Positions 6,041-64,000 of a stretch of DNA of 64,000 bases are shown piece by piece. The position numbers and the translations under genes are program-made. This DNA comes from Chlorokybus atmophyticus. Its lineage: Eukaryota > Plantae > Mesostigma and Chlorokybus algae. The DNA lies in NCBI GenBank assembly GCA_009103225.1, contig RHPI01003788.1, positions 88,839 through 152,838 of the forward strand, written 5' to 3'. The first letter of the stretch is position 1. Every line of letters begins with the position of its first letter. A model generated the notes under the pieces. It was not told the origin of the DNA and did not search any database. It was given only the letters and a program-made list of their open reading frames with translations.

Positions 6041-6430
6041 CGCACATATGACTGGAAGGCGGTGGAGAAGCATGTCTCCAGAGCCCATCACCAACTGCCG
6101 TTGGCTATCTCACAAAAAATCAGGAAGAAGCGTGCAGAGTTGTTGGGTTTGGTTGACAAGCTGAGTCCCACTAAGAGCACGCATGTCTTCTTTGTGATGT
6201 ACATGTTGAACGGTAGTAGAAATGCCTATGTTGGTCTCACTAGCCACTGCTTTTTACCGTTTCAAGCAGCACATGCAGATGTCAACCCATGCAAGAGCAA
6301 CCCCGCTTGAGCTGCTGATGGGAAGGACGGGTGTATGGGCGTGGGGCATCACGCCTGTGGAGTTTGTTCCATTCACGCCATTTGCGGTCAATGTAGCAGG
6401 GCGCACAGTGTGCAGCTCAAGTGCAGCTCT
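6041..6430 (+). pseudogene. Frameshifted GIY-YIG endonuclease-like fragment (possible Penelope-like element remnant)
   Basis: Joining ORF 6062..6310 to ORF 6222..6443 across a +1 shift near 6250 gives VFFVMYMLNGSRNAYVGLTS-x-TAFYRFKQHMQ...LELLMGRTGVWAWGITPVEFV, which has the YVG.T, R..QH and G...W.I.P.E pattern. The C-terminal catalytic Glu helix is not seen. Confidence 0.45.
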
Positions 6431-8350
6431 ATGCTCCAGGTAAGGGACCCACGACAATGCCCGGTAATCTGTCAAGTGGTTTGACTTCCATGTCGCGGTA
6501 AGGAGGTCTGACAAAATTGAGGCCTTGACGGACTGCATCTGTCCAATGCTCCATGTACTCATTGCATGCACCGCTGAAAGGACTCACGTACTCGTGATGA
6601 TGATCATCACCCAAGTCCTTCCAATGAGCGAAGTACAACTGTGTGGCCCAACTGTCACGAGGACTTTGCGCGGATAATTCTGCCGTGCACAAGACACAGA
6701 GATTATCAACGTATGTATGAATGCATGCGTGTGTTCGTGCGCGCGTGCATGCGTAGGTGACACAACGGCAAGGGCACAATGTGGCATCCGTTTGAGAGTG
6801 CACTGGAGCATGTTTATAACATTCCATAAACATGCTCCAACTCAACGCGTGCATGTGCATGTCGCGCACTGCAGATACACACAGGCACCTTACATGGTAT
6901 ACAAGGTGCCTGTGTATATCTGGTCGTGCGTGCGTTCTCAGCTTTATGCCAACAGAGAAGCATTGTCGTACGCTGCGATTGAAAAGCCAAACGAACGCTG
7001 CTCCGTGCGTTTGCTCGGGGATCCCATGAACACAATCACCGAGGCATCGTCAAGCTCTCGCACTTCATGTAACTTTGCTCTCACACCCAAGAGCCGTGCG
7101 ATCCCAACTGCCATGATCTGCTGGCTGTAGTCAAGGTAATTGTGTATCATATTGTCATCGGAGTGACTGAACAGCAGTGCCTAGTCTTGCTTCCTCAACT
7201 CGGTTGTACGTTTGTTAGCATATGGTCCTGCACCCAACATGTCTTTCCCGCGCAGAGCGTAGCGCACGACAATGCTGGCCTGCTCCTTGCTGCCAGCTGG
7301 CACACAGTCGCATACCCGCTGAATCAAATTGATGTTGAGATTGGGCTCGAGCTTGCACGGGAACAACACGGCCGAGACTAAGTTACCAGCTGGAGGATGC
7401 CACAAGCGTAAATGCTTGCCCGCCCCTGCATGAGGCGTATCCTTTGACAGGAACCGCTTGTTAATAATAGCATATTGGCTTTGCATTTAACAAGCAGAAA
7501 GCGGTGAATGATTCTCAAGCAACATCTAGAATTTGCACTGATTGGGCGTCCAGACTTGCCTGGATCTGTTCAAAGTTTTGCTCTTGTTTGCAATTGACTG
7601 GAACGAGTGCATGTTGGTCTGTGCTGGACCCGCTGCTGTCACTGAAGTCGTCGCCTACAAGCAGCAACAGTCGTCAATCAGTGCACGTGAGGCAAGCATG
7701 GCTATACATGTTCTCACGCGCATGCACGCACACACACACACGCTCGCCTGCGCAACAGTCTGCAGTGACACCATGGGTAACAATATGCGATAGTAGTTGG
7801 CTGTGCACAAGTGTTATGCAAGCGACAAAACGGAAAATATGGCATTTCATCCGACGTACTGCTTCGTACTTTGCAAATTAGCGCAAACTGGGCGCAACTG
7901 TCGCAGCTGAGTCTCGAGTTGGGATCCGTGCAAACAGACTGTCAGCTGCCCATGAACTTGGACACTGTGTCACAAACATAGGGTCAAAACTGTGGTAACA
8001 GCTGACAAAAGACGACAGTTCTGGCAACTCTAATCACAATACAATACACATGCGTCTGGCACTTTAACCATGTGACATGCTTTTGCGGCTACTGCCTGTG
8101 CCACAGACAGCGCAAGCGATTGCTTGCAAGAGCGCAACCACTTGGTGACAATGCATGTTGGGCTGTGTGTTGACAGCCGCCTGCGCATTGCAGTTTCGCT
8201 TCAGCCGAGACGGCTTCACTGACATGCGCGAAAGCATGCTGCCGCTTTGTGTGCTCGTCTGCTTACCTGAGTCCAACTGCTGTTAGCACCTCAGCTGTAA
8301 CAACTTCCATGGGTTGAGCGACACGTCAAAGAGTCCTGCTATTGATGTGC
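6429..8350 (-). pseudogene. Family-1 copy A (frameshifted core)
   Basis: Core LWHPPAG..PCKLEPNLN..QRVCDCVP ends at a stop near 7181 and resumes in another frame (AVGIARLLG..FMGSP). Last exon EHWTDAVRQGL..LDRLPG. Upstream exon blocks are recognisable at 7560-8290. Confidence 0.8.
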
Positions 8351-9279
8351 AATTAGCTGATAAATCTGAAACAAAAACACCAAAAGAAGCAGGAAAAGGC
8401 TGAGGCAAAGCATGCGACGTGATCTGGCAGCTGTCAGCCTGATTCTTGCACGGACAAACTGTGCTGTCAACAGCAAAGCTAGTCGCAATGCAGCACAACA
8501 GTAATGTACAAGCAGCAAATCTGGCAAGTAAGTAACTTCTATGCATCAATCAGTGCCACGTGGTTGGCAACAGTGGGTTGTGAGCCATGATATCAATCAA
8601 TTCATTAGCCCCAACCAAGAGGCTCTCCTGACCAGCGATGTTGTAGCCGTGCTTTGGGCAAGCATTTGTACGACTGGGATAGTTTCCCACCTCAGGCAGG
8701 CTACCACATGCATATACCAGCAGCAACTAACCACAAAGCAGCCCACGCCAAGCTGAACATGGTAGCTTTTGGTACAATGTAGCCATATGGCCACAACCAC
8801 AAGTGCATGTCACGCACGTTGCAGTGTTTATATGGTGCAATTGTGGTCATGCACACACAATCTGTGGCAAGTTGCAGGCAGCAGACTACGCAGTGACAAT
8901 CTGTCAGCACTTGCTGAGCATTCATGTTACGTATATGCTGCTAATGGACCTAATTAGACACAGACGGCGCACACAGGCTGCATGATGGTCTATGAGCATG
9001 CACTTTCATACCCAGCCTAACATTGGCTCGGCACACTTCGCTGCAACTGGCTGCTTCAGAAGTGACCAAGAACCACTGGCTACCCAAACTATTCCGGTCA
9101 TTCTCTTAAGCATACCTCAGTCAGTGCAAGTCAGCATAGCAAGCTTCTGCTTTGCTGAACCGCAATGTCTAGTTTTGATTCTGTCCCTTCCTCGTCCTCC
9201 GGATTCGCCGCCGCCGCCGCCGCCGCCCGCCTCCACGCCCGCAGTTGCCACAGCTTGCTGCTCTGCACAAGACCCTTCT

Positions 9280-9470
9280 CACCGATATCGCGGGAGGCAT
9301 AGATGTCAATCTGTGTCGCCCCCTATCAAGCAGACACAATCGTTAGCAAGCTGCGTCTATATCCGCTCTCTCAGCGTTGCTGCTTATCAGCAAAACAGCT
9401 GCTGCTGCTGCTTGACGCTGCGCTTGTTGCTGCGCTGGTCGCTGGTGGCGTCGGCGGGCAGGATGTCTTC
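9280..9470 (+). repeat. Shared GC-rich central element between divergent copies A and B
   Basis: Motif gctgcgcttgttgctgcgctggtcgctggtggcgtcggcgggcagg plus a GATATC box; recurs across the array. Confidence 0.75.
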
Positions 9471-10061
9471 AGCTAAAGCCGAGAGTGAGTGTGCCCTGTC
9501 TTGTAGTAAGGTTTCTTAGAAAGCACCTGCGAGGTGGCAGGCGCTGCGGAAAGCGTTTACCGGGGAGCTGCGGCTTGGCGTGCGAGGAACGTGGCTAGCA
9601 GGCTACCAGCAGGCGCAGGGCAAGTAAGTTTGCGTTTAATCCAGCTGTGAGCTACTAAAGCAGCACAAGATGTGCAGAAATACTGGCTGTGGCTGACAAG
9701 CATGCTTGTGTTATTATGTATTGCTCTTCGTGTGATAGATGTTGTCTTTGCACACATACCAATGCACAAACGGCACTGCATAATGAGCAATCTATGCGTA
9801 ACTCGCCCTGCTGTGTGCAAACCGAGCTTGTTGGTGCAAGCTTGTGTTGCGCTGACAGCTTTCACATCTTGCAAGCTTTGCCTTAGCCTGTCGCATTTGT
9901 GCTACGGTAGTTGTGACAATGCTTCATACCAGCAGGACTTCAAGTGGCCACGCTCAAACCATGGACTTTTTTCTTGCTGAGGCGGCAAACGCTTGTGGAT
10001 TCAGGTAAGCCGCACAGGCACACACAAGCACACTGTTGATTAGCACACAGTCAACGTCAGC

Positions 10062-11840
10062 ATGCACTTGCACAGTGCCAGTGAAGTTGTCTTGGCTGAA
10101 GCAAAGCTACAATGCGCAGGCAGCTGTCAACACACCACAGCCGACACACATTGCAATCGAGTGGTTGCACCGTTGCAAGCAGTCACTTCTACCAGCAACC
10201 ACGGAAAAATGTCAGGTGGTGTGAGTGCCAGAAGCGTTTGTGTTTGGCGTCAGCTGTTACAACAAGTTTATGACGTCAAATGTATGTATTACAGTGTGCA
10301 AGTTTATGGGAAGCTGACGGCTTGTTTGCTTGGGACCCGACTCAAGACTCGGCTGCAACAGCTGCGGCTGCTTTCTGGACAACCGCAAAGTACGCAGCAG
10401 TTTGAGCGCACCCCATAGTTGCTTGCTGAATGCTTAAGCCTGGTTTGCAGCGTGCCAGTTACACAGTGGTTGTCATTACACATGCTGTCCTTGCTACACG
10501 TGTGTGGACGCCCACACGTGCTTGTGCGCGCATGCGTGCATGTACCTGTCTGTACGACACACAAGAAGCACAGCTGACCAACGGTGGTTGTCTGTAGTTG
10601 ACGACTCAACCAACAGTAGAAACCAGTACCAGCATGACAAAGACGGCAGCAAGCATAAACAAACCTCCGATCAGAACCAGGTAAGTAGTAGCATGTGCTG
10701 CGCGAGTCAACCAGTGGTTTATCAACCAACAACAGCTTGATCTACAATAAGCAACTTCACTGTCCCCCAAACCGCTTCCGTTCTCTCAGGAGGATGCACG
10801 TAACGAGGGGGCAGAGGCTCCCAAGTGCTTGTGGCAGCTGCCAGCTGGCATCATGTACACCGCCTTGTTGGTCCCATGCAAGCTCGAGCCCGACTTCAAC
10901 ACCAACTTGATCAAGCGGGTCTGTGACTGCGTGCCAACTGGCAGCAAGGAGCAGGTCAACACTGTCGTGCAGTACGCTCTGCGCGTGAAAGACAAATTGG
11001 ACGCAGAACCTCAACCCAACACACGTGCAACCGAATTGAGAAAGCGAAACCAGGCCCTGCTGTTCAGTTTCTCACATGACAACGAGATACGCAACTACCT
11101 TGGTAGCAGGGAACAGGCCATTGCAGTCGGGGTCGCACGGCTCTTGGGTGTGAAAGCGACGATGTATGAAGTGCGAGAGCTAGGCAATGCCCGGACAATT
11201 GTGTTCACGGGATCCCCCGAGCGAGCGCATGCAGCAGCGTACGTGAGTGGCTTTGCAATCACAGCACTCAGCAACGCCGAACGCAACTACAATGGGGTAA
11301 GCTGATTGGTACTCAACACGAAATGTTGGATGTTCTTGGCAGATAGGTCATATGCCACCGACAACTACTCCTGTTTAAATTGCTGAAGTTGAGAACACAT
11401 GTGTGCACACACAGGCGCACACAAATAGACACAGGCACCTTGCATGCATGCAAGGCACATGCACGCATTGAGCAAATCACACTTTCGCACACACGCACAG
11501 ACCCGCATGGTGATTGTACACTGTGTCACATGCGAGCGCATGCATGCACGCACATGAGCACGGATATGTGCAATGAACAATCTCTGTGTCCTATACATGG
11601 CAGACCGGTAAGCGTAAGGTTTTTGTGCCGGTCGGGACCACAGATCTGTACTTTTCTGTCAAGGAGACATGCGATGATTACTTGGAGCAATGGACGGACG
11701 CAGTCTTTCAAGGTCTCAAAATTGTTAGACCTTCCAACCCCAGCATGGAAGTCACATCACTTGACAGACTACCAGGCGCTGCCGTGCCTCCCTACTTGGA
11801 GCATACAGCTGCACTACAAGTCGCCCTTGGCAAACCATAA
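10062..11840 (+). CDS. Family-1 copy B, open spliced frame; exons 10062-10389, 10598-10680, 10790-11296, 11604-11840 (384 aa from ATG 10062; true start may be upstream)
   Basis: Three GT-AG introns with compatible phases (1,0,0), 1155 nt total, no internal stop. A small indel alters only the last residues relative to the consensus ..PPLFGA*. Confidence 0.7.
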
Positions 11841-12929
11841 CGGACTTTCAAGCTGTACTCTTGGATTGACATTGCACTCAGTGGTCGCTTCTTGAGTTCC
11901 AAGCATGCACGGAGCTGCCATTTAACATCTGGACAACACCAGTAGTAGCAGCTGTGACATCTTCAAGTGGTGGCTTGCAATTCACACATGCGTGTGTGCG
12001 ATTTGTTACAATTTCACAGCTTGATCCAGGCACGCATGTACGACCACCTCATGCGCAGCGTTGCTGTGATTGACTTCATGTAAGCAGCAATGGCAGTGTC
12101 AGTAAGCAAGCAACACTTGTTGGCTCGGATAGCCTCGACAGCAGGAATTGTATGGCTACACATGGCTTCTTCGGCCTGTTGCTGATGCGTGCATGCATAG
12201 CAACTAGCAGCTTTACAGTGCCCTGCTATCAACTATGAACAACAGCCTCATGCTGCGCTTCATGTTGATGTTAAGGCATGTGCAGCCGTTTGCAGAAATG
12301 TTTGGTTAAGTATATATGAAAAAAACAACATTGGTTGCAGTGGTTGGTTTGGGCAGAGAGGCCGGGAGGAGATAAAATAAAAGTTCCACTCGCGCTCCCC
12401 GTGAGTTGTGGTAAACGTCAACCGGCAATTAGGCAATGAATTGCTAGCTGTTTACATAAAGCCTATATACATTGTATACATCATGTAGTACACAAAATAT
12501 CCCTTATAGGACATAGTATTCATATAAGCACTATATACATATAGCATACATAGTATCAACAAATATATATGCATATAGACACATAGTAGCACACCCCTTT
12601 TGTACACGCACACACACGACAGGGATCATCGCAACTGCAAAGGTGACGTGTCATGTTGACGTCACACATGCATGCTGTGCGATGGCTAACCTTAATTGGC
12701 CTAGCGGTAGCGCCGGCGGTGCATTGCAGCGGGCGGGGAGTGGAAGGCGGCAGAGCTAAAGGGGAGGGCGGGGGAGTCCGTTGGGTCTGCTGCGGCTGCC
12801 TCGCCTAGGATGGGCTCGCGAACCAACCGCCGTTGTGCATGTGACCAACCTGACTATGCATGCATGCATGACTGACGGGGCAAGTAGTGTTAGTGTCTGA
12901 GTAGTAGATAGACGTAGCCCGGTGGTGTT

Positions 12930-15575
12930 TTTTTTGGTTTTTGTTTTCACGCAAATCAATGTTGTATTAAGAGCGAGCAAAAGCGTTTGATGTTGTGAGC
13001 TAGCTAACTATTAGAGTAGTAACAGAACAAGACATACAACAAGAGGGTAGTAGGTAGTGTTTGAGAGTAAACTAATTGTGCTAAGTTGAGTATGTCCACG
13101 TCCGCTAGTAGAAGGAGGAGAGTCGGATGATTATATTGGGAAGGGGGGGCTGCCTGTGCCACAGACAGCGCAAGCGATTGCTTGCAAGAGCGCAACCACT
13201 TGGTGACAATGCATGTTGGGCTGTGTGTTGACAGCCGCCTGCGCATTGCAGTTTCGCTTCAGCCGAGACGGCTTCACTGACATGCGCGAAAGCATGCTGC
13301 CGCTTTGTGTGCTCGTCTGCTTACCTGAGTCCAACTGCTGTTAGCACCTCAGCTGTAACAACTTCCATGGGTTGAGCGACACGTCAAAGAGTCCTGCTAT
13401 TGATGTGCAATTAGCTGATAAATCTGAAACAAAAACACCAAAAGAAGCAGGAAAAGGCTGAGGCAAAGCATGCGACGTGATCTGGCAGCTGTCAGCCTGA
13501 TTCTTGCACGGACAAACTGTGCTGTCAACAGCAAAGCTAGTCGCAATGCAGCACAACAGTAATGTACAAGCAGCAAATCTGGCAAGTAAGTAACTTCTAT
13601 GCATCAATCAGTGCCACGTGGTTGGCAACAGTGGGTTGTGAGCCATGATATCAATCAATTCATTAGCCCCAACCAAGAGGCTCTCCTGACCAGCGATGTT
13701 GTAGCCGTGCTTTGGGCAAGCATTTGTACGACTGGGATAGTTTCCCACCTCAGGCAGGCTACCACATGCATATACCAGCAGCAACTAACCACAAAGCAGC
13801 CCACGCCAAGCTGAACATGGTAGCTTTTGGTACAATGNACACATATTTAAGGAAAGCAGTAAGCCAGTTGTCGTCTGAATGAACTGTTGACTGCACTCGT
13901 GACCACTCACTTTTTGCCATCTCCAGGATGGCAGCGGATATGGTTAGGATGCAGCGAGAGGGAGAGGTAGGAGTCAAAGCGAAGGCGGTTGCGCGCCAGC
14001 CAGATGTGTCATAAGATTAGTGGGAAGAGCTTTCGCCAGAGTTCCTTAAGCGGTAGGTCCGGGGAGGGAGAGTGAAAGAAGACGGTGTGGAGGGATGATG
14101 TGAAGGGGAGGCCTCCTACGTGAGTCCATCATGTGCACAGCTACTTCCACACCTGCATGCTGTAGGAGCAGTCGATGAAGAGATGTGAGGGGGTTTCTAG
14201 ACGGGGAGTTGTGCCAAAATGCAGCTGCCCTCAAACATGTCAAAGCGCTGGAGGCCATCAGCGGTGTAGTAAGCATGGTGTAAAAGTAGCCACATAAAGG
14301 ATTTGATTGATCCTTTATATGATGATGAGTGAACCAACTGCCAAGCTGTTGATCATAGCTCGCCTGGGGCTAGTGTCTGCGGTCATCTTCTCGCAGCAGG
14401 AGAGAGATGCGCTTGTCTGGAAGCTAGAAGGTGGTAGCCTAGTTTGGCTCTGTATTCCAGAGAGAGCCAGGTTGAGAGAGTGTGGACTCGGGAATCCAGT
14501 CTGTGGCTATGGGGTCAATGTGCAGTGAGCGGAGGGGTGCGGCGCCAACTACTTTCTAGCCTGCATAGCGCTGAGCTGGGGGAAGTGCTTGCCAAGTTGC
14601 GCTACTAATTAGAGCGGTGGAGCGAAGGAGGCGCCAGTGATGTGGAGGGGGTAGGACTCATATGCGGACAAATTGACGAAGGCCGTACAAAGAGGCAAGG
14701 GGGAGGCCAGTGTATCTTCTTTCGGATCTTTCAAGGTGAAGGCCGTTGCTGTAGAGCGGTTGAGTGATGAGTTGCCAATGCGAAGCGCTCTAGTGATGGA
14801 CAATGAGGGAGAAGGCACTCCCCACCATTTGCCTGATGACGAGGTGCCAGTTCCCTCCTGTAAGATTGTTCGCAATTCAGCGGGGAGGGCTTGTTGCAGA
14901 ACTGTAAGCTGTTCCTGCGCTGTAGTCAGAGATAGTTAGAGTCAGGGTTCTAGCGTTGTTGCTAGGCGAAAGGACCTGGTCGCTGTGCTCCACAGATCTT
15001 GCACAACCAGAAACTCTACTGAAGCCTAGCGGCGCCGGCGATGGCGGGAGGAGCTGCTGGAGCCAAGGGGCTTGCCTCCAGCATCCAAGATGAAAGGGTT
15101 AAGATATAGGGATTGGCGAAGTTCCTCATCATATGTAATGGGTGGGAGGGGAGAGGAAGGCCGCACCTTCAACCAAGATTTGAAGATGCGCTTCCAATGC
15201 GGGGGGAGGTGGTGCGTTGGTAGTCCTTCTGCAGAGTAGAGGGCTGCTCCATCGGGAGCCAGCGTATCAACTGCGCAGGGGTTCGTGCTCTAAGGGGAAG
15301 CTGTTCGCAGCCCCATAAATCTAAAGAACGGTGGCCTAGTACTTTTCATGTTGCTTATGTTGGATCAATCGGTCTCGCTGCCCATTTCGCAAGCAGCGCT
15401 GATGATTGCCATCCAAGATCATGGACTCCAAGCCCTCCTTGTGAACGGCGTTGGCAAACTGTTTGCCAGTTCACTAAGCCTCCTCCGGTGCTAGAAGAGC
15501 GTTTCTACAAGAAGGCTCGGACGCTGGAGGTGATGGACTTTAGCGCAGCCGCTGGCGGAGAAACTATTGCAGCTA
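12930..15575 (-). mobile_element. 5'-truncated, degraded L1/Tx1-type LINE (ORF2 C-terminal region, 3' UTR, A-rich tail)
   Basis: Minus-strand translation gives PPHWKRIFKSWLKVRP..EELRQSLYLNPFIL..VQDLW (about 15.2-15.0 kb) and a zf-RVT-like KSFMWLLLHH..C..ETPSHLFIDC..VW (about 14.3-14.1 kb), with stops and frameshifts. A-rich tail aaaacaaaaaccaaaaaaaa at about 12930-12950. Interrupted by 13150-13837. Confidence 0.75.
13150..13837. repeat. 688-bp apparently identical copy of 8092-8779 lying inside the LINE (probable misassembly)
   Basis: No differences seen by eye; bounded by a G run on the left and a single N (13838) on the right. Confidence 0.85.
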
Positions 15576-15929
15576 GGTGCCACATGCATGATCAATTCGT
15601 TATAGCCAAGCTGCAGTAAGCATTAAGCTGCTGCTAAGCAGCATGCAGTGCCATGTTTGCAAAGGCAACATCGACCACACGAAGAGCAATACAAAATAAT
15701 ACAAGCATGCTTGTCAGCCAGAAGCTTCTGCACATTTTGTGCTGCTTTGCAAGCTCACAGCTGAATTGAAAGCAAACTCAATCCCCCTGCGCCTGCTGGT
15801 AGCCAGCTAGCCACCTTCCTCACACGGCAAGCCGCAGCTCCCCGGTAAACGCTTTCAGCAGCGCCTGCCACCTCGCAGGTGCATTCCAACCTTAACACAA
15901 GACAAGGCAAGTTCACCCTAGGGTTTTAC

Positions 15930-16120
15930 TGAAGACACCCTGCCCGCCGACGCCACCAGCGACACCAGCGACCAGCAACAAGCGCAGCGTCAAGCAGCAG
16001 CAGCAGCAGCGCCTGTTTTGCTGATAAGCACAAACGCTGAGAGAGTTTGCGCGGATATTGACACAGTTTGTGGCCGAATGCCTGGGGACACAAAGGGCTG
16101 ATATCTAGATGCCGGCAATG
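15930..16120 (-). repeat. Central element copy (reverse orientation) upstream of copy C
   Basis: cctgcccgccgacgccaccagcgac..caacaagcgcagc..cgcctgttttgctgataagcac followed by GATATC. Confidence 0.75.
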
Positions 16121-16999
16121 TCGGGAAGAAGGGTCAGCTGTGCAGCGCAGCCATTCCATCTTGGCAGCTGCGGGGCGGGCGGCGCCGGCGGCGGAGGACG
16201 ACGAAGGGAGAGAGCCCAAGCTGTAGAACACTCTCTTCAGCAAGTACAAAGAATTTGTCCGCTGATCTGCAGGAAGTGAGGTATGCATAGCAAGCTGGAT
16301 GACAGCCACTAGCCAATTGTTGGGCTAGTTGCTGGTTGACAGGTTTCTGAAGCAGCTGGGTGCAGCAATATATGTCGGGGCAGCTGCCAGGCTGTGTGTC
16401 ACAGTGCATGCAAGCTACATGCTGTTTGACAGCATGCAGCTTTGTGTGCGTGTGTTGACTCAGGTCCACTTCTAGCTAACTTGCTTTGGCGTAAGTGCTC
16501 TGATCAACTGCCACTGCGTAGTCTAGGTCTGCTGCCTGCAAGTGTGCCACAGTGTGCATGACCGCAAATACACCATCTTCACACTGTGCATGAATTGCAA
16601 TTGTTATTGTCATCAACATCAACTAATACCGGCTAGATTGCCAATGCTTCCATGACCAGCCATGCTGCTTTATGGTCAGTCGCTGGGTGACAGTGTATGC
16701 ATGGGGTGTGCAAGCCTACCCTTTGTGGGATGCTTGCCTACAACACGGTTACAACATTGCTAGCCCAGGACAAGCTCTCCTGAGTGTTATTTGGTCTCTC
16801 GGCTCAAACAAATTGTTGCCAAATGTGGCATTATACAATGCTTAGAAGCAACATGCTTGCTTGCCGATCGATAGCTGTGCTGCACTGCAGCTAGCTATCT
16901 CATAAGCATACACAATTTGTCCGTGCAAGCTTCACGCTGATAGCTACCACATGTCGCATGCTTGGCCTCATTCGTTTCGCCTCTCCTAGTTGACAATGC

Positions 17000-37300: not shown

Positions 37301-37312
37301 TCTCAATCGTCC

Positions 37313-38580: not shown

Positions 38581-38598
38581 AACCGCGCTCCGATACCA
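38581..38598 (-). other. Primer-binding site complementary to a tRNA 3' end (initiator-Met-like)
   Basis: Minus strand TGGTATCGGAGCGCGGTT, 2 nt inside the 5' LTR; close to the plant tRNA-iMet PBS TGGTATCAGAGC. Confidence 0.8.
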
Positions 38599-38600
38599 GT

Positions 38601-50580: not shown

Positions 50581-50899
50581 AAACCTAAGTGGTGTTGAAG
50601 TGTTGGTGTGCATAGCAAGCACACCGCAATTGTCACCATTCTCTGTGTGAGTGCATGTGTGCTTGAGTGTGTGGGCGTGAGCGCGTACGTGTATGGGATG
50701 GGGGCTTGGATGGGTGTGGCTTGCATTGTCCGTGCACAGCGTACGTGTGCACTGTCGCTACACACCTCGTCCGCAATGTGCAAGTCACAATGAACGAGTA
50801 CTGCTGAAAAGACCTAACGAGAGTATGTTGTGGTGTGCAGAGGGAGACATGTATCACAAGTTTCCCTTATAGCACAACTAGCCTAGCTGAGTACTTCAG

Positions 50900-53429: not shown

Positions 53430-53650
53430 TGTCCTGACCCACCTGTCCGCGGACGCCGGACAGGTGGGTCAGGACGAAGCGCAGCAATAAGCAGCAGCAG
53501 CGCCTGCATTGCGGATAGGCACAGAAGCTGAGACAGCAGTCTGCAGCGGATATCAACATACATGTGCAACGATATCGGCGGGTTAGAAGGGGGACCTTGG
53601 GAGAACCGACCGACTTGTCAGCCAGCGTCGGTGATATCGACAGGACCTGC
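53430..53650 (-). repeat. Central element copy between copy I (minus) and chimeric copy J (plus)
   Basis: cctgacccacctgtccgc..gcagcagcagcgcctgcattgcggataggcac plus three GATATC boxes (about 53549, 53571, 53634). Confidence 0.7.
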
Positions 53651-54315
53651 GCTTGTTAATCAGACTGCAGCTCTCTCTGTTACAGGCAGCTGCCGTCAGG
53701 GCGGCGGCGGTGGCAGCGGCGAAGGAGGTGGAGAACGACAAGCGAGAGCAGAGGGAGGAGGACCAGACGCTGATTGTCTACAATCCTGAGGTTTGTATAC
53801 TGAATAAGCTGCCTCGGCTCGGTCTGCTGGTGGCTTTGTTCGCCAGACGAAATGGCGGCTTGCATTGTGGATGGTCTGCTTTGAAAGTGATCTTGTTTGT
53901 TGCGATAGGCTGGCCACTCATTGAGCCGGAATTTCGGTTGAAACAGCTTCATGAGCCTGCAGCTGGCTTAACGCCTCAGATGACATGCATTCAAGTTGAT
54001 TGCATGATCAGCCCCGAATGCTGTAGCAGCATGACTTAAGAAAGCGCGAGCTAACAGCTGCAGTTGAAAGCTGTTGCAAGTCGAGTGCAGGCAAAGGCTG
54101 GCTTCAGCTTATGCATTTTAGTTGGTGTGACTATCAAACTCGTGCGTTGAGTGTAACCGGTCTGAAAGTGTGATTGTGTGTGCACACATGACGTTCTACA
54201 TGGCGTTGAATAGCCACTGCCAGCATGTCTGACATGCTGTTGCTTGCCTCATAACTGCATGGTGACTACGCAGAGTCAGCTGTGGCAGCAGGCAACTTTC
54301 TGTCACCCACTAGTC

Positions 54316-56059
54316 ATGGCGTTGGCCGCAGCGACAAGCCTGCACAGCACAGGGGTGACAAGAAGGTTTTCTGCTAACTCTACTGCTGCTCCGCATCGCC
54401 GTGCTGCTGCTGCTGGACCGTCATGCTGGAGCCGTGGGTATAGAAGGAGCACTGCTTGCTGCTCTGGAGGCAGCCAAAAAGATGACAGCGGTGAGTGCGT
54501 GTGTGCAAGCGTACGCATGTGTGCGTGCACGCACAGACAAGCACACTCAATTCAGAACAACTTGACACTGATGGCGTTATTGCTATTGTTATCCGCAGCC
54601 ATGCCAGCCTGGTTCAAACCCGCAAACGAGAAGCTCAACCAACTGACTGTCGACATTGGGTCCATGGAGGCGTATATAATGCCCATCGCTTCAAGAAAGT
54701 CAGGTCGATCGCACGCGTGCAGATGTCCAAGCATGCCTGTCCGCGTGTGTGCTTTCTTGTGCACTTATCAACTGTTGTGGTTTGTAGATGATACCTCAAG
54801 TGACACTGGCCTCGCTACCGTAGTGACTGGCAACGAGGCCAGCACCAATACGCTTGTTCAAGGAGACAGTACCGGCAAGTCAGAGCACAATCCCAATCAG
54901 AACCAGGCAAGTTGTGCATGCAATTGCCAGTAGCCTGTGCTGCCTGAGGAGACCACTGCTTCCTCTGTCTTGACTAACATAGGCATCTTCGCCATGTCTC
55001 AATGTTGAGACGCGGGAGGGTTAACCCTCCCGTCCTCTCAGGTCGATGCGCCTCATGGAGGAGATGGCGAGCGCTTGTGGGAGCTTCCAGCTGGGAAACC
55101 AGTCTCAGCCTTATTGGTGCCGTGCAAACTCGAACCCGGTTTTAGCACCGCTTTGATTCAGCGGGTGTGCGGCATAGTGCCAGCTGGCAGCGAGGAGCAG
55201 GCCAGCGTTGTCGTGCGCTACGCTCTGCGCGTTAAAGACATGCTGGACGCAGAACCGCAACCCAACATACGTGCAACCGCAACGACGAAGCGAGATCAGG
55301 CCCTGCTGTTCGGTTACTCTTCTGACCATAGTCTATACAGTGACCTTCGTAGCAGGGAACGGACCATTGCGGTTGGGATCGCACGCCTCCTGGGTGTGCA
55401 AGCGAAGATGTATGAAGTGCGAGAGCTTGGCAATGCCCCGACAATTGTGTTCACGGGAACTCCCGAGCGAGCGCATGCAGCAGCGTATGTGTGCGGCTTT
55501 GCAATAACAGCATACGGCAATGCCAAGTTCAACTACCGCGGGGTGAGTTCACTGAGTGACATTTGATAATCAATGTTACCCAGTGGCAGGTTGATGATCT
55601 GCCACCAAGTACCAACGTAATCTTCTTTGTTTGCGCCTGGAGTTTAGAACGCATGCGAGCATGCACAGGCACACACACATACGCACCTTGCATGCTTATA
55701 ATGCACACACCTGCATGAAAGCACAGCCTGTGCCCTGCGCATGATTCGTGAAATGTGTCACGTATGCATACGTGCATCAGATTCACGCACGCACGCACAC
55801 ACACGTGCACGAACATATGTTGACCAACAACTTGTGTGTGTCTCATGCATGGCAGACCGGTTGGCGTAAAGTCTTTGTGCCAGTTGGAACATCAAAGTTA
55901 CACTTCTCTATCAAGGAGACACTTGATGATTACTTGGAGCAATGGACGGACGCAGTCTTTCACGACCTCAACATCAGTAGACCTTCAGACCGCGACATGG
56001 AATTGAAACCACTTGACAGATTACCGGGCGCTCCTGTGCTTCCCTTGTTTGGAGCGTAG
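54316..56059 (+). CDS. Chimeric copy J: family-2 5' exons fused in frame to family-1 3' exons; exons 54316-54490, 54599-54703, 54788-54906, 55042-55542, 55856-56059 (367 aa)
   Basis: Phases 1,1,0(GC donor),0 are all compatible, 1104 nt total, no stop. N-terminus MALAAATSLHSTG..TACCSGGSQKDDS/AMPAWFKPANEKLNQL is family 2; DDTSSD linker, LWELPAG core and ..LPGAPVLPLFGA* end are family 1. The start codon is uncertain. Confidence 0.65.
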
Positions 56060-58149
56060 AGCACAACAAGTCGCCCTTGGCTGACCACAAGCTCTTGTTT
56101 TTTTAGCTTTTCAGTGTATTGTACTTTGACTGAATTATCTCTTGGTAGTCGCTACTGACGATCACCAGCACCAGCAGTATTCGGACAACTGTGACAGCGT
56201 GAAGCCACCACTTGAAGTTCAAGTGGTGGCTTGCAATTTATCATGGGAATTCACACACGCGTAACTGGTTCTGTTACAGTACAACGTTACAGCTCAACTC
56301 GGGCACGTGTGTGTGACCACCTCATGCATAGCGTTGCTTTGAATGACTCGATGTAATCAGCCATGGCTGTGTCGTTAAGCAAGCACTGCTTGATTGCTCA
56401 GATAGCCTCCACAGGAGGAGTTGTATGGCTACAAATGGCTTATCCGGTCTGTCTATGGTGCGTGCATACATAGCAAACAGCAGCCTTACAGTGGCCTGCT
56501 AGGCCGAGGCCCAGACACAGCAAGCGACCTCTGTGTGCAACATTCCACTTGCCGCTGCAAGTGGCAGAGACAAGAGACACCAATTGGATTGAAAGCCGGT
56601 TGGTCTACGCAGACTCAGTATTCAGTACCTGCATACACACACACTTCCACTGCCTGAGTCTTGTCGCTAGCTCCACCACTACATAAGTACCGTAGCTACG
56701 CAGCTCGCTGTCAGGTGCGTCAACTAAGTCGCTTGACAAGCAGAGAACTCCCGTCAAGTAGCGTCTCCCCGTCCTGACCATCACGCACGCCGCCGACACC
56801 GACGCCAGTGACAAGGCGTGTTACGTGCATCAGTCGCTCCCTTACAACAAGTAGGCCTATCATAGGCTTAAACCCTTTGCACGAGTCCAGTATAGAAGCC
56901 AGTACCCGCCATGTCGTCTGGACCCCTCTCGTTATGTGTGCTACCGTAGTGGCCGTGGCGGGGGTCGAGGACGAGGAGGAGAGGGAAAAGCGAGAGGACA
57001 GCCATTGCCAAAGCTGAAGGGGCGGATTGCTGAAAGGCAATGTCTGTCACAATAGCGAGGTCCACTGTGGGTTGGTGCCCTGGTAGCTGCCCTCTGAAAA
57101 GGGCTTGGCCAGCTCAACCGCATCCAGATTGGTTGATATGAGGGCGCAAAAAAGGCACATGCATAGCATGTGCTCTTTCTTTCTTGAAGTTGTTGTACTT
57201 GTTTCTTGTTGCAATTTGGTCTTCCGCTGCAAGCATGCCCGCACTTGCTGTGGCTGCAATGTGAGTACACTACAGCAACGGGAGGTGGAGTTGTGATGCA
57301 ACGCCTTGTTGGAACAGCAGGCATTGGGAGAATACATGCAATGAACACCAATGATGCTTAATAAACGCTTGTCAACAGTGTTGAATGCACATTTGCGCAC
57401 CCTTGCAGGCAGGCGGGCACGCAGACACACAGCCTACTCAATTCTGTACGCAGACACCTTGCATGCACAATACACGCGTTGAGCAACACGTGCACCGGCA
57501 CGTATGCACCAAGCGACATGTCGTACACGCTCATACGGACGCAATGCAGTGCATTTGCGTATGAGCGTTAACGACTTATCATAATGCTGGCATGCACAAC
57601 TGTACTTTAAATGCATGTGCACGTGGACATGCGCATCCACACACGGATGTTTATTGTACATGCACTTGCCAGAGACAGGCCCAGACACACTACTAGCCTT
57701 TAGACTGAAAGTAATGAAGTACTGTAGCCCGGTGGTCAACATGAACTTATATTGAAGGTTGGCGTGTGCTGCTCTTGCTTGCATGTTGGTTTTCAATGCA
57801 TGCGCACTTGTATCACGCATTTACTATACAAAACATGCAGGCATTCAAGCCCTGTGGCGGCTGTGGCGGCTCCGAGCAACCAAACAGCAACGATAACACT
57901 GTCATTGCTGCTTTCCAAAAAGTGTTTACAGCAAGGCTCAGCCAGTGTGCTGCGGATTGGTCGCACATCCCTTGATCTCGTTGTCGCTGTAGCACAGCCG
58001 CAAAGACACAAGCTATGTACCATGCTTTATCCAAGGAAACCACCACGGCTGCTGCTCACAACCACTGGAAGCGCTCACAGCTACTACTACTTCTGGTGGC
58101 TGGCCTGTTGTGTGTCAGGTTTGTTTCGCACTAGCTTGCAACCCAAGTG

Positions 58150-59230
58150 GCTGGCCTGATCCTCAATGCCATCTGGCACGCAGTCACAAACCCGCTGAAC
58201 CAGATCGGTATTGAAATTGGGTTCGGGTTCGCATGGGACCATCACGGCTGAAATGGGAACGCCAGCTGGAAGCTGCCACAAGCGCTCACCAGCCCCTGCC
58301 TGAGGCGCATCAGCCTGAGAGGACGGGAGGGTTCAGCCATAGTGGGAGGGTTCAGCCATGGCGCAGATGCCTAGGTTGACTAAGCTGGCAGAATATTTGA
58401 ACGCAGCACATGCTACTTGCACCAGTCGCATAGCTGAACTTGCCTGGTTCGAATTTGAGTTTTGCTTTTGCTTGCCGTGAACAAGCGCGGGTTGGCCCGT
58501 GGTGCTTTTACTTGAGTCGTCGTCTACAACTGGAAACAGTTAGCCCGTGCATAAGCACACATGCTTATACCCGTGCGTGCGAGTTCACACAAGCGCGTGA
58601 ACACACACGCGCACACACACAACACTCAGCAAACGACGGCATGGGTAACAACACGAAGTTTTCAGTTGGCATGCTGCATACAGGCATACAAGCAAGCAAG
58701 TTTGCAATAAAAGCCTGGTCCATAGAACACTGCTGCGTACTTTACACATGAGCGCAAAGCGGCTGCATATGTCGCAGCCGAGTCTTGAGTCGGGTTCCAA
58801 GCGAACAAGCCATCAGCTCCCTGCAAACTTGGACGCTGTGACACAATTACTCGTTAAAACACATCGTAACAGGTGAACACAGCTTGTGGCAAAACCAGAC
58901 AGCTATTTTGAGCTGAGTGAATACTACTCAACCGTTGAGCTGTATTTTCAGAAGCGTGTGTGACTTACGCTTCTGGCGCAAACCACCTGAAACGCTTTTG
59001 TGGTTGCCTATGTAAGCAACTGCTCTCAAGAGCGCAACTGCTCAATTGCATTCCGTCCGGCTACGGTGTGTTGGCAGCCGCCTGCACATTGCAGCTTTGC
59101 TTCAGTGGCATGCCCAAGTGCATACTGCCAGTGTTTGCTTACCTGAGTCCACATGCTGTTGACGCCTCGACTACAACAGCTTTCGTTGGGGGGGGAGTTG
59201 AGCGATGCATCAAAGAGTCCTTTCTCTGAA
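58150..59230 (-). pseudogene. Family-1 copy K (core truncated by a deletion that joins directly to the 3' flank)
   Basis: LWQLPAGVPISAVMVPCEPEPNFNTDLVQRVCDCVPDGIEDQAS then loss of homology; the conserved 3' flank block follows at about 58090-57800. Confidence 0.75.
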
Positions 59231-59324
59231 ATGCATGCTTATTTTAAAGTTTATCAAGGAGTGTTCAGAGCGAGTACAAATTATACAAGCTTGACAACGC
59301 TTGACAACGCAAAGAGAGTCTATG

Positions 59325-59520
59325 CCTCTCCTGACCCACCTGCCCGCTGACGCCGCCAGCGACGAGCGCAGAGACAAGCGCAGCAGCAGCGCCTGTGTTT
59401 GCGGATAGGCACAAAAGTTGAGAGGCTTGTAAGACATTCAGTGATATCCGCACATTCGAAAAGCAAATCTCGGAGAATGGACTGGTTTGTCAACCAGCCC
59501 CGGTGATATTAACAGGATCG
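59325..59520 (-). repeat. Central element copy between copy K (minus) and a family-2 5' fragment (plus)
   Basis: cctgacccacctgcccgctgacgccgccagcgacgagcgcagagacaagcgcagcagcagcgcctgtgtttgcggataggcac, then GATATC. Confidence 0.78.
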
Positions 59521-59559: not shown

Positions 59560-59770
59560 TGCAGCTGAAGTGAGGGCGGTGGCGTACGAGGAGAAGGAGG
59601 AGGAGGAGTTAATCTAAGCTTCGGCGGGCTTGCCGTCGCTTAGGAAGGGAGGCGCAGTTACTGCTACTGCCCCGCATCATTGTCGCCATGCTGCTCGCTT
59701 ATCATGCTGGAGCAGTGGGTATGAAACGAGCACTGCTTGGCGTTGGCGTGCAGGGAGAAGGCGCTTCTTG
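59560..59770 (+). pseudogene. Family-2 5' fragment
   Basis: GC-rich acidic block followed by TAPHHCRHAARLSCWSSGYETSTA, homologous to the first family-2 exon. Confidence 0.5.
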
Positions 59771-60609
59771 AACTGGAGTTCTGTCCTCTTGGCTCATGAC
59801 GTGGTTGACGTGCCCGCAAGGCTGCATAGCTACCGACGGTGGTGGAGCTACAGACAAGGCAGGCGGATTGTGTGAAAGCATACTGGACGTTGAATGTACA
59901 GAAGTATAAAGCGCAACATATGTACAGACGTCTCAACGCGTATAGCCAGCATGCAAGTGTGATGCATTGATAACGTCATCATGCCCACCACTCATCCAAT
60001 TACACTCTTCAATACATGTCCGTCGGTGTATAAGACATGTGAGGTGCAGTTGTGCATGCAAACTGCCAGCAATCATATTCTACTGTGTTGCAGTGCTTGA
60101 CACGCACACACACACTCTGAAGACCAGCTGGCTCTGAGAGTACTACTCTCCGTAGTACGGAGTAGTGACTTTTGCTGCATCACAGAGAACGCTTTCTGTT
60201 TTGGGCCCCAGCCTGCCAGGCCCTCTGTGAGGCTGTGTGTTGAGCATGCACCCACCGGAGATAGACCACGAAACACATCTGTAGGCATGCAGGCCCTGCT
60301 GTGGGTACGACCTCAGCAGTTGAGGAGCATCAACACTGACATTGCTGCTGCTGTGAACTCAGACCAAAAAGAGCTGTGCTGCGTGTGTCAAGCTGACACT
60401 TTGTCACATCCCACACATGTGTATGTCTTGTTTTCAAGCAAGCACCACCAGCTGCTGCTGATCACAGACACATGAAGCTTCTTACATCTACTTGTGGTAC
60501 TACTTTTGGTGGTGTCCAAGGCGACCCAGAGCAAAGTGTCGTTTGGAGGGTTCAGCTGAAAAGAACAGTTGAAAGTATGTTGTGGTGCAGGGGGACTTGT
60601 AGTGCAGCT

Positions 60610-62333
60610 TTATGCTCCGCCTAAGGGAAGCACTGCAGCGCCTGGTAACTCGTCAAGCGGTTTGACTTCCACTTCGCTGAGGGAAGGTCTAACAATATTG
60701 AGGCCTTCAAAAACTGCATCCGTCCATCGCTTCATGTAGTCTTCCACAGAGAAGTACAGTACTTTGGTCCCGACTGTCACAACATCTCTGTGGGTCTCCT
60801 TCCGTAATAGCTAAGACACAGAGTTTGTCAACATATGCATATGCGCGTGCAAGTGCGCGTGCTCCATTGCGTGCATGCAAGGTGTCTGTGTGTGTGCGTG
60901 TTTGTGAGCGCATGTGTATGTGTGCACGCATGTGCAATCAGCTTTGTGCAGGCGCAAATGGTATTTGTGAGGTGGCAGATGACACTGTGTACCAGCCAGC
61001 TTACCCTTGGTGTGCACAAGTTGAAGCTGGCATTGCTGTATACTGTGATCGCGCAGCCACACATGGCCGCCGCTGCATGCGCTCGTTCAGGAGATCCCTT
61101 GAACACGATTGCTGTGGCATTGCAAAGCTCTCGCACTGTATATATATCTGCTTTCACACCCAGCAGCCGTGCGATGCCAACTGCAATAGCCTTTTCGGTG
61201 TTATTAAGGAACTTGAGTATTTCATCGCCAGATGAACGATAGAACAGCAAGGCCTGGTCTCGCCTCCTTGACTCGTTTGCAAGCATGCTGGTATGTGGTT
61301 CTCCGTCCAATATATCTTTAACCTGCAGAACGGAGCGCAAGACAGCGCTGGCCTGCTCCTCTTTGCGACCTGGTACACCGTCCATGACTCGTTGAACCAA
61401 AGCGCTGTTGAAGTCGGGCTCGAGTTCGCACGGGACCATCACGGCTGAGATGTAATCGCCAGATGGAAGCTGCCACAAACGCTCGGCAGCCCGTGCTTGT
61501 AACGCATCAGTCTGAGAGGGCAAAGTTTAGCCAAAGTAAAATTTGCTTTTGTTGGTCAAGCTAGAAGCAGCAGTGGTGTCCTCGTTCAGCACATGCTACT
61601 AGCATCGATTCACGTCAACCTTGCCTGCTTCTGACTGGAGGTTTGCTCTTGCTTGCCACCGTTGGCTTGAACAACTTTGTGCTGATTCGTGCTGTCCTCG
61701 CCGCTGTCACTTGAGTCGTCATCTACAAACAGTAACAGGTCAGTGCCCACGCGCGCATGCACACGCGTGCTCACGCACGCCAACAGCATTCAGCAGTCAT
61801 ATCCTGCGCAATGACACTCGCAGTTTTCAATTGGCGTACTGCACAAGCAGGCAACCAGCGTTTAACAAACTTTTTCATTAAGGACAGTGCTGCGTACCTT
61901 GCGAAGGAGCGCAAACCGGCCGCAACTTTTGCAGCCAAGTCTTGAGTCGGTTTCTGAGCAAACAAGCCGTTAGCTTGCCAAATACTTGGACATTGTTGAA
62001 CACACAAACACATATTGCAAGAATCTGGTGTAGTGTCTGACCAAGCTTGCTGAACAACACGACAGTGCTTGCAAGGTGAAACACAATACGCACATGCTTC
62101 TGGTCACTGACCGTCACACCACCTGCCATGTTTATGCTGTTGCTGCAATCGCCTGTTTGCAAGTTGAGAGCGCAGGTGGATTGACTGCAACTCCTTCCCG
62201 GGCCGGCTGCGCAATGCAGCATTGCTTCAGCCAAGACTTCACTGATACTTGCTGCGAATGGGTATTGCTCGTGTAATTGTGCGTAAAGCCTTACCTGCCT
62301 CCACCTGGTTTTGCTGCCGCCTGAGCTAGACAT
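60610..62333 (-). CDS. Family-1 copy L, open spliced frame; exons 62333-61898, 61722-61625, 61511-61005, 60810-60610 (413 aa from ATG 62333)
   Basis: Phases 1,0(GC donor),0 are compatible, 1242 nt total, no stop. The consensus last-exon acceptor is mutated (cag to cgg) but an in-frame AG lies 9 nt upstream. Ends ..LPGAAVLPLGGA TAA. Confidence 0.68.
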
Positions 62334-62814
62334 AAAGGATCAAAGTCCATGGCTTAAGCCACACTGTTGCTCGGCCGCCGGACTGCTGTCGAACAACGAG
62401 TCCTGCGGATGAGACGCGTATGGCAAAGATTTTCAAATGGAATTACGGAAACACGGACGCCATACGCTGTACATGTGTCAATGCATGCAACATATTGTCT
62501 GCATGCTTGTCAGCAATCGCATGTTGCAGAAACATGAAAGTTGTCTGGCAATCTTTTTTTGTGTGCTGCAAGATCCGTGAGCAAACGGAGAGCCAGCAAG
62601 TTATCAGTCATGCACGAATAATTTGCCCAGCCAGGCAGTGCAACAGCATGCAGTAACGCAGCCTGCCTGCACTGCGCCTGCTGTGCCAGGCTGGTAGCTA
62701 GCTACCTTACTTACACAGCAAAGCGGCAGCTGCGTACCGCTGAAGCAGCGGCGCAAACTGGTCACGGGCTTCCCTCAGCTTACAAGCAAAGCTTGACAAG
62801 GCAGGAGCAACGTC

Positions 62815-63050
62815 CTTGCTGACCTGCTGCTGTCCGCCGACGCCGCCACCGGCGAGCGCAGCGATGCACAAGCATAAGCTTATGGCTTACGCATACAAGC
62901 CATAGCCGAGACATAGACATAAGTCTCGGCTTATAAGCTTGAGTCTCGGCTTATAAGCATAGGATCCGGCCATATCAGCTCAGGCTATATCAGCACACAA
63001 TAGAAGAGGCAAAACTGGGAGAACTGACCGCGATATCATCAGAACCGCGC
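62815..63050 (-). repeat. Central element copy between copy L (minus) and a family-2 gene running off the window (plus)
   Basis: ctgacctgctgctgtccgccgacgccgccaccggcgagcgcagcg, with GATATC near 63033. Confidence 0.65.
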
Positions 63051-63703
63051 TGCAGGCTGCAGACTGCAGCTCTCGTTTTGACATGCACCTGATGCCGTGA
63101 GGGCGTTGGCGTTGGCGCCGGCGGTAGAGGACAAGAAGGAGGAGAAGGAGGTACTCACCTGCGCTCGAGGTCTGCGCTTTATCTGCTGGTGTGCAAAGGG
63201 TGGTTTGCCGAGTTGACTGGCTGCTTGACAGGTCAGCTTGCTGGACCATGCCGAATGTCAACTGGCTGTCCAATCAGCTATCCAATAGCACAGTCGACAC
63301 AACTTGATGATCATGCTAGCTGTCTTAACACCGAAGCTTGAATGCATGCTCCGATTGCTGCCGCAGCTGAGTGACGCCAGAGCAGCGGACCGTCACAGCT
63401 TGCTCTGAGCTGCAGCGGACAACTATTGCATGCAAGTCTAGTGCAGGCAGAGCAAAGGTGATTACGGCACGCATGTTGTGAGTTAATTTCGAATCCATGC
63501 TTTGGGTGTGAGCGGCTCTGTGCATGTGGTTGCCTGCGCACATGATGTTTGCATGGCATTGGAAACCGCTGCTAGCATGTCTGTCTTGTTGTCAGTATGC
63601 AGTGCACTACTTGATGATTATCAGATGACTGCATGATGACTATGCAGAGTCCAACTCTGAATCAGCTGTTGCAGGAGGCGTTACGTATATCTCCACCTTC
63701 TTC

Positions 63704-64000
63704 TTGCAAGTCATGGCGCTGGCTGCAACGACAAGCCTAAGCAGCACAGGGTGGATCACGAGAGTAAACTCTTTTATCTGTATTGCTCCTCATCATTGTC
63801 GCCGTGCTGCTGGCCCGTCATATGGGAGAGGTGGTAATAGAAGGAGAACTGCTTGCTGTTCTGGAGAAGGCAGCCGAAAAGATGAAGTTGACAGCGGAGA
63901 GGGTTAGTGTGTGTGCGCTCGCATCAACGTATACCGGCATGTGCGTGCATGTGTGCATTCGTACAAGCTCACGCATGTCAGAATTTGCGTATGTGGAGAT
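63704..64000 (+). other. Family-2 first conserved exon; gene continues beyond the window
   Basis: QVMALAATTSLSSTG..APHHCRRAAGPSY..RRRTACCSGEGSRKDEVDSG, homologous to 54310-54490. Confidence 0.6.

Follow-up and report, generated by a model that had tools for sequence, protein, structure and literature searches.

A Chlorokybus-Specific Array of Two Divergently Paired Gene Families, Probably Shaped by Birth-and-Death Evolution

Introduction

Plant NLR clusters, including those of the paired NLRs RGA4/RGA5 and RRS1/RPS4, are birth-and-death clusters with head-to-head pairs. The fungal HET-domain and oomycete Crinkler expansions are lineage-restricted and rapidly diversifying, and some of their domains are of prokaryotic ancestry. 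Here, these systems are compared with an array of two gene families, family 1 (F1) and family 2 (F2), which spans about 58 kb in the streptophyte alga Chlorokybus atmophyticus. The array lies in a stretch of 64,000 nucleotides (contig RHPI01003788.1 of assembly GCA_009103225.1, positions 88,839–152,838 of the forward strand). This whole stretch is called the window below, and all positions are counted from its first nucleotide.

The F1/F2 array resembles plant NLR clusters in its tandem and inverted duplications, its divergent pairs over a short intergenic region, its mixture of intact genes and pseudogenes, its chimeras, and its insertions of transposable elements. Unlike in plant NLR clusters, the defining domains are not found, and positive selection is not seen. 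The array shares lineage restriction and rapid diversification with the HET and Crinkler expansions. It differs from them in that no HET or Crinkler domain or motif is found with Pfam, and the N-terminus of F1 is not signal peptide-like. The third system for comparison is the group of phage and plasmid proteins in which the domain DUF2786 is followed by DUF7168. The C-terminal core of F1 aligns with these proteins over about 90 columns, and Pfam, hhalign, and Foldseek indicate no other group. In contrast to them, F1 is eukaryotic, has five introns and a long disordered N-terminal tail, and is arrayed.

The locus is a birth-and-death family, with duplicates of mixed age, open copies beside disabled ones, and purifying selection on the open copies. 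It is also a set of divergent pairs, arranged head-to-head over a short intergenic region with a conserved element. The reading favored here, with somewhat better than even confidence, is that of a Chlorokybus-specific multigene locus that arose from a divergent module of two genes through birth and death, whose F1 genes are probably of the DUF7168 type, and which is not a mobile element.

Divergent Modules around a Shared GC-Rich Element

F1 and F2 are unrelated families whose units are found on both strands, and most units point away from an intergenic stretch with a conserved GC-rich element. From left to right, the order in the window is A(−) B(+), fragment(−) C(+) fragment(+) D(+), and F2a(−) F2b(−) F1 fragment(+), followed by retroelements. 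The order after the retroelements is fragment(−) J(−) H(+) F2c(+) I51(−) F2d-Ch55(+) K58(−) F2e(+) L(−) F2f(+). Six divergent pairs are seen: A/B, J/H, F2b/F1 fragment, I51/F2d, K58/F2e, and L/F2f. The spacing within the pairs is about 0.5–1.7 kb, with one conserved GC-rich (GCT)n element.

This conserved element is about 110 bp long, contains a (GCT)n run, and is present in seven intergenic regions. It lies between A and B (9357–9477, +), upstream of C (15925–16085, −, an inverted copy of the J/H element), at the 5′ end of D (22030–22150), between J and H (45720–45860, +), between I51 and F2d (53470–53590, −, partial), between K58 and F2e (59315–59435, −), and between L and F2f (62815–62935, −). 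Its 21-nt core occurs six times, against 0.00 occurrences expected from 100 shuffles. The GC enrichment of the element patches is modest, 60–71% against a background of about 52%. In each pair, the element has the orientation of one F1 gene, and it would most likely be a shared promoter or 5′ untranslated region.

The F2-proximal halves of the intergenic regions are homologous between modules. This indicates that the pairs were inherited through duplication of the module and did not originate independently. The partners of a pair are not each other's closest relatives: A and B are 77% identical and J and H are 73% identical; instead, B is near H and C is near J. The two segments 15592–21762 and 40448–46207 are the arms of an inverted segmental duplication, and they are 94.8% and then 89.5% identical.

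A 697-bp direct repeat (8092–8788 and 13150–13846), 99.6% identical with three differences, brackets copy B. The first repeat copy holds the 5′ exons and the upstream region of copy A, and the second contains a single N at 13838. Either the repeat arose very recently by partial duplication, or it is an artefact of the assembly. It was also considered as a pair of long terminal repeats (LTRs) and was rejected as such: it has no TG...CA ends, it represents the 5′ end of A, and it brackets an intron-bearing gene.

Two chimeras are present. One of them, Ch55 (54214–56090, +), consists of F2 exons 1–2 (F2d), an F1 exon 4-like part, an open F1 core exon (55045–55536), and an F1 terminal exon (55856–56090). 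It begins with 239 codons that are uninterrupted by stops. No JGI model was found for Ch55, which could be a fourth working gene of the F1 type whose N-terminus differs. The second chimera (31413–32014, +) starts with an F1 5′ fragment (exons 2 and 3, 31413–31726), continues into an F2 exon-2-like piece (31884–32014), and contains a single N at 31868.

Copies of Family 1

Exon-by-exon blastn and tblastn searches reveal 10 F1 loci with the core exon (A, B, C, D, J, H, I51, Ch55, K58, and L) and four further fragments, which are two 5′ fragments and two solo terminal-exon fragments. A first-pass annotation of this DNA had counted at least 12 F1 copies. The array it described is real, with the count revised to these 10 loci and four fragments. 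Its description of copies in both orientations with a conserved exon-intron structure holds as well: eight loci (A, B, C, D, H, I51, J, and L) have a common six-exon layout, e1 to e6. The core exon e5 is 504–507 nt long, the terminal exon is about 200 nt long, and the copies have five conserved GT-AG introns. The identity of the core exon is 67–81% between copies, except for two young pairs, B/H (94%) and C/J (96%).

B, J, L, and Ch55 have an open core exon; in the other six of the 10 loci, it is broken, deleted, or truncated. The broken copies bear just one or two lesions each. Frameshifts were counted from the tblastn frames; a count at the DNA level is inflated by compensating indels. B, J, and L had been listed as the open copies, and six others are indeed broken, but the list was incomplete without the core of Ch55.

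Copy B (9961–11840, +) and copy L (60589–62350, −) have six exons and are open, and both have complete six-exon models in the JGI annotation: Chrsp171S02336 (P0002, 353 amino acids (aa)) for B and Chrsp171S02340 (P0001, 333 aa, coding sequence 60610–62350) for L. The core and terminal exons are open in copy J (42953–44743, −), whose JGI model Chrsp171S02350 (P0009, 267 aa, 42987–44711, −) is a shorter, four-exon version.

Among the disabled copies, A (6420–8340, −, exons e6 to e1) and I51 (50891–52870, −, exons e1 to e6, the most divergent copy) have one stop in the core. One frameshift and one stop are seen in the core of both C (17039–18833, +, e1 to e6) and D (22025–24301, +, with the GC-rich element at its 5′ end). 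C has a partial JGI model, Chrsp171S02337 (P0004, 18248–18799, +). The model of D, Chrsp171S02349 (P0003, 22025–24235, +), contains an extra intron that cuts the core exon and is absent from all other copies. H (46383–48202, +), which is nearest to B, has an internal deletion with a frame change in the core. K58 (58150–59189, −) retains e1 to e4 and the first third of the core, and its 3′ part is missing.

Besides the 5′ fragment of the second chimera, an e2-like 5′ fragment (13172–13238, −) is located inside the second copy of the 697-bp repeat. One solo terminal-exon fragment (20192–20854, +) is broken by an assembly gap, and the other (41335–41534, −) is its uninterrupted paralogue.

The array had been called undescribed, which is too strong: the JGI/EukProt annotation already includes five F1 gene models of the window, as proteins without a name. 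Literature searches yielded no paper about the family.

Copies of Family 2

Seven copies or fragments of F2 are found in the window, in line with the earlier estimate of about six. Copy a (25585–27197, −) is full-length relative to copy b (28915–30350, −), which is itself full-length and divergent from the F1 5′ fragment at 31.4 kb. Neither of the two is open throughout, for copy a under the shared exon pattern. Copy c (49473–50563, +) is the most diverged and has lost the conserved start codon. Fragment e (59618–59760, +) is exon-1-like. In copy f (63629–64000, +), exon 1 is open from the conserved ATG, and the window end cuts the copy.

In the multiple alignment of F2, the start ATGGCG, the donor GCG/GTGAG, and the acceptors CCGCAG/ and TGCAG/ are common to the copies (slashes mark exon boundaries). 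The conservation of the start and splice signals indicates that F2 is, or was, a multi-exon gene. Frame-wise substitution counts favor coding in the last exon, where the ratio of nonsynonymous to synonymous differences (pN/pS) is about 0.5.

An open reading frame (ORF) of 297 aa in F2 was rejected as a protein, as it runs through GT-rich introns. It has no homologue in a length-limited search, in which shorter or longer kin fall outside the range. F2 was searched exon by exon, and the exon ORFs have no match in Pfam, NCBIfam, PADLOC (four ORFs, E-values up to 1), or PDB. As read from its sequence, F2 is a separate multi-exon family without a recognizable domain.

The Domain of F1

The F1 protein is about 330–350 aa long. 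Its N-terminal third is disordered, polar, and acidic, and it is followed by an alpha/beta C-terminal domain of about 210 aa. The protein is probably intracellular.

DUF7168 (PF23771) is the only or the top Pfam match for seven of nine F1 sequences, at profile positions 16–108. The gathering cut-off of this profile is 25.5 bits. P0007, an F1 protein encoded on another scaffold, scores 28.9 bits, above the cut-off, and P0002 scores 25.4, which is 0.1 below it. The scores of P0005, P0006, P0003, P0009, the Ch55 core, and the B core are 13.6–21 bits. P0001 and the core ORF of L have no DUF7168 match in Pfam. For comparison, gp74 of Stenotrophomonas phage AXL1 (OL674541), a bona fide member with DUF2786 and DUF7168, scores 67.2 bits for DUF7168.

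AXL1 gp74, its phage relatives, and two relatives from environmental plasmids were compared with F1 as alignments. hhalign of F1 against the phage and plasmid alignments gives E-values of 5.2e-4 (probability 31%, A2/A6) and 2.3e-4 (44%, A7/A8) over 87–95 columns. The signal is present in the alignment-against-alignment comparison alone, and single-sequence hhalign against AXL1 gp74 gives no match. F1 and the DUF7168 members have the same order of secondary structures (helix, strand pair, helix, helix) and a common G-x3-R-x3-A-x-Y motif. F1 has about 90 extra structured residues ahead of this common core.

Two independent AlphaFold models of F1 have a mean predicted local distance difference test score (pLDDT) of 56 and 65, with about 70–90 in the domain. 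In Foldseek searches of BFVD, the top matches of both models are the same uncharacterized phage proteins, and entries named DUF2786 or DUF7168 rank lower. The probability is up to 1.00, with E-values of 4e-3 to 5e-2 and template modeling (TM) scores of 0.3–0.45. Sequence, profile, and Foldseek searches of PDB with F1 give only noise, such as glutamine synthetase matches with a TM score of about 0.16.

The DUF2786 motif (PF10979), which AXL1 gp74 has, is not found in any F1 sequence at E-values up to 1–5. F1 has no match in NCBIfam, and the five F1 proteins searched against PADLOC have none at E-values up to 1. In PHROG, the matches of F1 are sub-threshold and limited to one unnamed family (phrog_421, E-value 0.005 for P0007).

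Since the Pfam, hhalign, and Foldseek lines, each of them weak, agree and nothing competes with them, it is likely that DUF7168 and the core of the C-terminal domain of F1 are remote homologues. The first-pass annotation had proposed two prokaryote-like domains, one possibly with a nuclease fold. The first half of this proposal probably stands for F1 and fails for F2, which has no domain match. The second half is not borne out, as neither F1 nor F2 gives any hint of a nuclease fold. F1 has no apparent catalytic motif, which may suggest that it acts by binding a partner, either protein or nucleic acid, and not as an enzyme.

Among the plasmids with a DUF2786/DUF7168 match, 244 of 305 are conjugative. 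In the AXL1 genome, the DUF2786/DUF7168 gene (11735–12418) is located in the replication module, with DNA polymerase I on one side and DUF2815, a Cas4-like nuclease, and primase on the other. These two settings hint that the domain may act in DNA replication or establishment.

Selection on the Open Copies

The protein identity between the open F1 cores is 57–64%. Their ratio of nonsynonymous to synonymous substitution rates (dN/dS) is 0.44–0.67, with dS of 0.45–0.64, and the bootstrap intervals are below 1 in most pairs. The ratio is below 1 in every open-core pair, and no positive selection is visible at this resolution. For the short terminal exon, dN/dS is 0.64–0.73, with wide intervals. 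The earlier statement that differences between copies are often synonymous is therefore only moderately true. A dN/dS near 1, which would have spoken against the first reading, is not seen in the core exon. The third-position periodicity of mismatches has too little power even for the F1 core.

The four open cores are stop-free and without frameshifts, though they are 22–25% diverged from the nearest open relative. In a neutral simulation of substitutions, the probability of being stop-free is 0.11–0.135 per open core and about 2e-4 jointly for the four, with indels not counted. This low joint probability indicates that at least B, J, L, and Ch55 were kept open.

Several points weigh against the birth-and-death reading with a DUF7168-type F1. 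Aligned intron positions of F1 are about as similar as exon positions, with more indels in the introns, and the constraint on F1 is therefore weak. Frame-wise pN/pS did not single out one coding frame for exon 1 of F2, and the window contains no F2 copy that is both complete and open. The JGI models could be ab initio predictions and nothing more. For the DUF7168 link, every single line is weak, with Pfam scores mostly below the cut-off, hhalign probabilities below 50%, TM scores of 0.3–0.45, mean pLDDT of 56–65, and no DUF2786 detected. Finally, the near-identical repeats, single frameshifts, and chimeras could partly be artefacts of short-read assembly, because the Chlorokybus assembly was built from short reads with SOAPdenovo, GapCloser, and Pilon (PMC7027972).

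Several of these points would also fit an array that is mostly dead, that is, an old family in decay whose open frames are leftovers or short-read artefacts. The similarity of introns and exons, the fairly high dN/dS, the missing open F2 copy, the six of 10 cores that are broken or truncated, and an assembly method that is error-prone in repeats, with N sites by poly-G runs or duplication edges, are all in its favor. It has to explain, however, why four cores diverged by 22–25% carry neither stops nor frameshifts, why the dN/dS intervals exclude 1 in most pairs, and why the broken copies carry one or two lesions only. Fully modelled family members are also present on two other scaffolds. An array in general decay is thus rather unlikely, and the birth-and-death reading is retained.

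Mobile Elements in the Array

A Ty3/gypsy LTR retrotransposon of the chromovirus type is inserted at 33236–39272 (−). Its LTRs (33237–33912 and 38599–39272) are 98% identical, and its domain order is gag, CCHC, reverse transcriptase, RNase H, integrase, SH3, and chromodomain. The gag-pol region is not continuous, with at least six stop-free pieces. At the bounds used, a target-site duplication is not clearly visible. An older retroelement integrase remnant (Integrase_H2C2 and rve, 32100–32760, +) adjoins the chromovirus and cuts the F1 5′ fragment. The chromovirus and the remnant are separate insertions that interrupt the array, and the chromovirus is not part of the repeated F1/F2 module. Together with the mixed ages of the duplicates, the two chimeras, and the broken copies, they confirm the duplication, chimerism, pseudogenization, and transposable element load previously noted at this locus.

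The other large ORFs of the window have no viral or transposase domain. One ORF (57050–57433, −) shows a faint NUMOD-like (I-HmuI) match (E-value 0.002, 17.9 bits against a cut-off of 27). As support for a nuclease, this match was rejected: it is in neither family, the ORF is non-repeated and not protein-like, and the match is probably due to chance.

The presence of retroelement sequences, the bracketing of copy B by the 697-bp direct repeat, and the phage and plasmid origin of the DUF7168 relatives raise the question of whether the repeated unit is itself cargo of a transposon or endogenous virus, with its copies being insertions and not duplicates of host genes. The properties of the units are different from this expectation. 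The copies have five conserved GT-AG introns; they are 67–81% identical, not near-identical, and locally clustered; the units have no common terminal repeats, and the 697-bp repeat is without LTR-like ends. Hallmark genes are confined to the chromovirus and the separate integrase remnant. No relative is found in IMG/VR or phage genomes, and the base composition is like that of the flanking host region. Cargo is very improbable and was rejected because of the introns, the lack of common terminal repeats, the old divergence, and the lack of viral relatives. No transposable element or virus signature was found for the F1/F2 units, which speaks against an accessory ORF set of a known transposon or virus.

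Distribution and the Question of Genetic Conflict

A search with the longest F1 ORF returned solely proteins of C. atmophyticus (JGI Chlat1, Chrsp171). The window corresponds to scaffold Chrsp171 of this species, as three EukProt/JGI Chlat1 proteins align to it at 99–100% with GT/GC-AG introns; in all, five such models do so. Among 1.84 billion representatives and in a 5.8-billion-cluster collection, all F1 relatives are from Chlorokybus: the five models in the window, a single one on Chrsp2, and a pair of neighboring genes on Chrsp175. No F1 relatives are found in IMG/VR, JGI metagenomes, GTDB genomes (pattern and tblastn scans), or phage genomes (tblastn). The two genes on Chrsp175 are P0007 (Chrsp175S00138) and P0006 (Chrsp175S00139), and one of them has a C-terminal hydrophobic tail. 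Some family members may thus be membrane-anchored.

Lineage restriction is one of the features that would fit a paired defense, recognition, or genetic-conflict system, in which F1 or F2 senses, the other executes, and an arms race drives turnover. Divergent pairs with a shared element, the mixture of open and broken copies, the chimeras, the fast divergence of the proteins (57–64% identity, dN/dS about 0.5), and the residence of the known relatives of the domain in phages and plasmids are also compatible with such a system. Lineage-specific, fast-evolving clusters often have no immune role. Pfam finds no NB-ARC, NACHT, LRR, TIR, HET, Crinkler, or nuclease domain in F1 proteins or F2 exon ORFs, and neither family has a PADLOC match. 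Moreover, dN/dS is below 1 in every pair, and the window has no complete open F2 copy that could form a working pair. The function in defense or recognition suggested by the first-pass annotation was drawn by analogy from the dynamics of the locus, and the searches for NLR, HET, Crinkler, and PADLOC matches do not bear it out. By this comparison, a conflict system is quite unlikely.

A more specific version could be speculated, in which the Chlorokybus lineage gained a DUF7168-type gene of a phage or plasmid, the gene acquired introns and F2 as a partner, and the two became a divergently transcribed, fast-turnover two-component system for conflict with viruses, mobile DNA, or other cells. This version is a long shot. 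On present evidence, F1/F2 would best be treated as an uncharacterized lineage-specific family, for which an immune role would be speculation.

Evolution of the Array

Under the birth-and-death reading, the building block is an F1 gene divergent from an F2 gene or from a second F1 gene, placed around one GC-rich (GCT)n element. Tandem and inverted segmental duplications have multiplied this module locally, over a long time. The copies then drift under weak purifying selection, and stops, frameshifts, deletions, the insertion of a retrotransposon, and unequal recombination remove them; the recombination also gives rise to the F2/F1 chimeras. As for the origin of F1, the most economical scenario would be that it was acquired long ago from a bacterium, plasmid, or phage and then gained introns and expanded.

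Flanking DNA and Assembly Gaps

An ORF with a Sua5/YciO/YrdC domain (2172–2969, −, E-value 1.6e-31) is an ordinary host gene on the left of the array. This flanking gene indicates that the array is in normal nuclear DNA, and in base composition the array is like the host gene region beside it. Searches of the window for tRNA genes, Rfam matches, and tandem arrays found none.

Three N sites (an N run at 20275–20699, and single sites at 13838 and 31868) are near poly-G runs or at duplication edges (positions 20253–20274, 13138–13149, 13838, and 31845–31868). They look like gap-filling or sequencing artefacts and not like biology. With these sites in a short-read assembly, the structure of the repeats, frameshifts, and chimeras needs confirmation.

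The N run sits within the solo terminal-exon fragment (parts 20192–20233 and 20713–20854), not within a full gene. In the inverted paralogue at 41335–41534, the flanks of the gap abut within about 3 nt and the fragment is uninterrupted, indicating that the gap flanks are homologous and in collinear order. In addition, the gapped copy contains an unread stretch and about 32 nt that have no match in the paralogue. The site is either an insertion or a gap-filling artefact. ORFs spanning the N run are artefacts of it. Because the gapped copy is a fragment without a core exon, the gap is irrelevant to the argument.

Implications

The locus is a compact worked example of the birth-and-death evolution of a two-gene module. 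Chlorokybus is placed at the base of streptophytes, and its lineage-specific gains therefore inform how early relatives of land plants got new genes. If the DUF7168 link is true, F1 would be a eukaryotic, intron-bearing, and expanded branch of a domain otherwise known from the replication modules of phages and from conjugative plasmids. The gene would then likely have been acquired horizontally before it expanded, and the uncharacterized domain could be studied in a second biological setting. If a conflict system based on DUF7168 were true, it would represent a new kind of algal immune or incompatibility locus.

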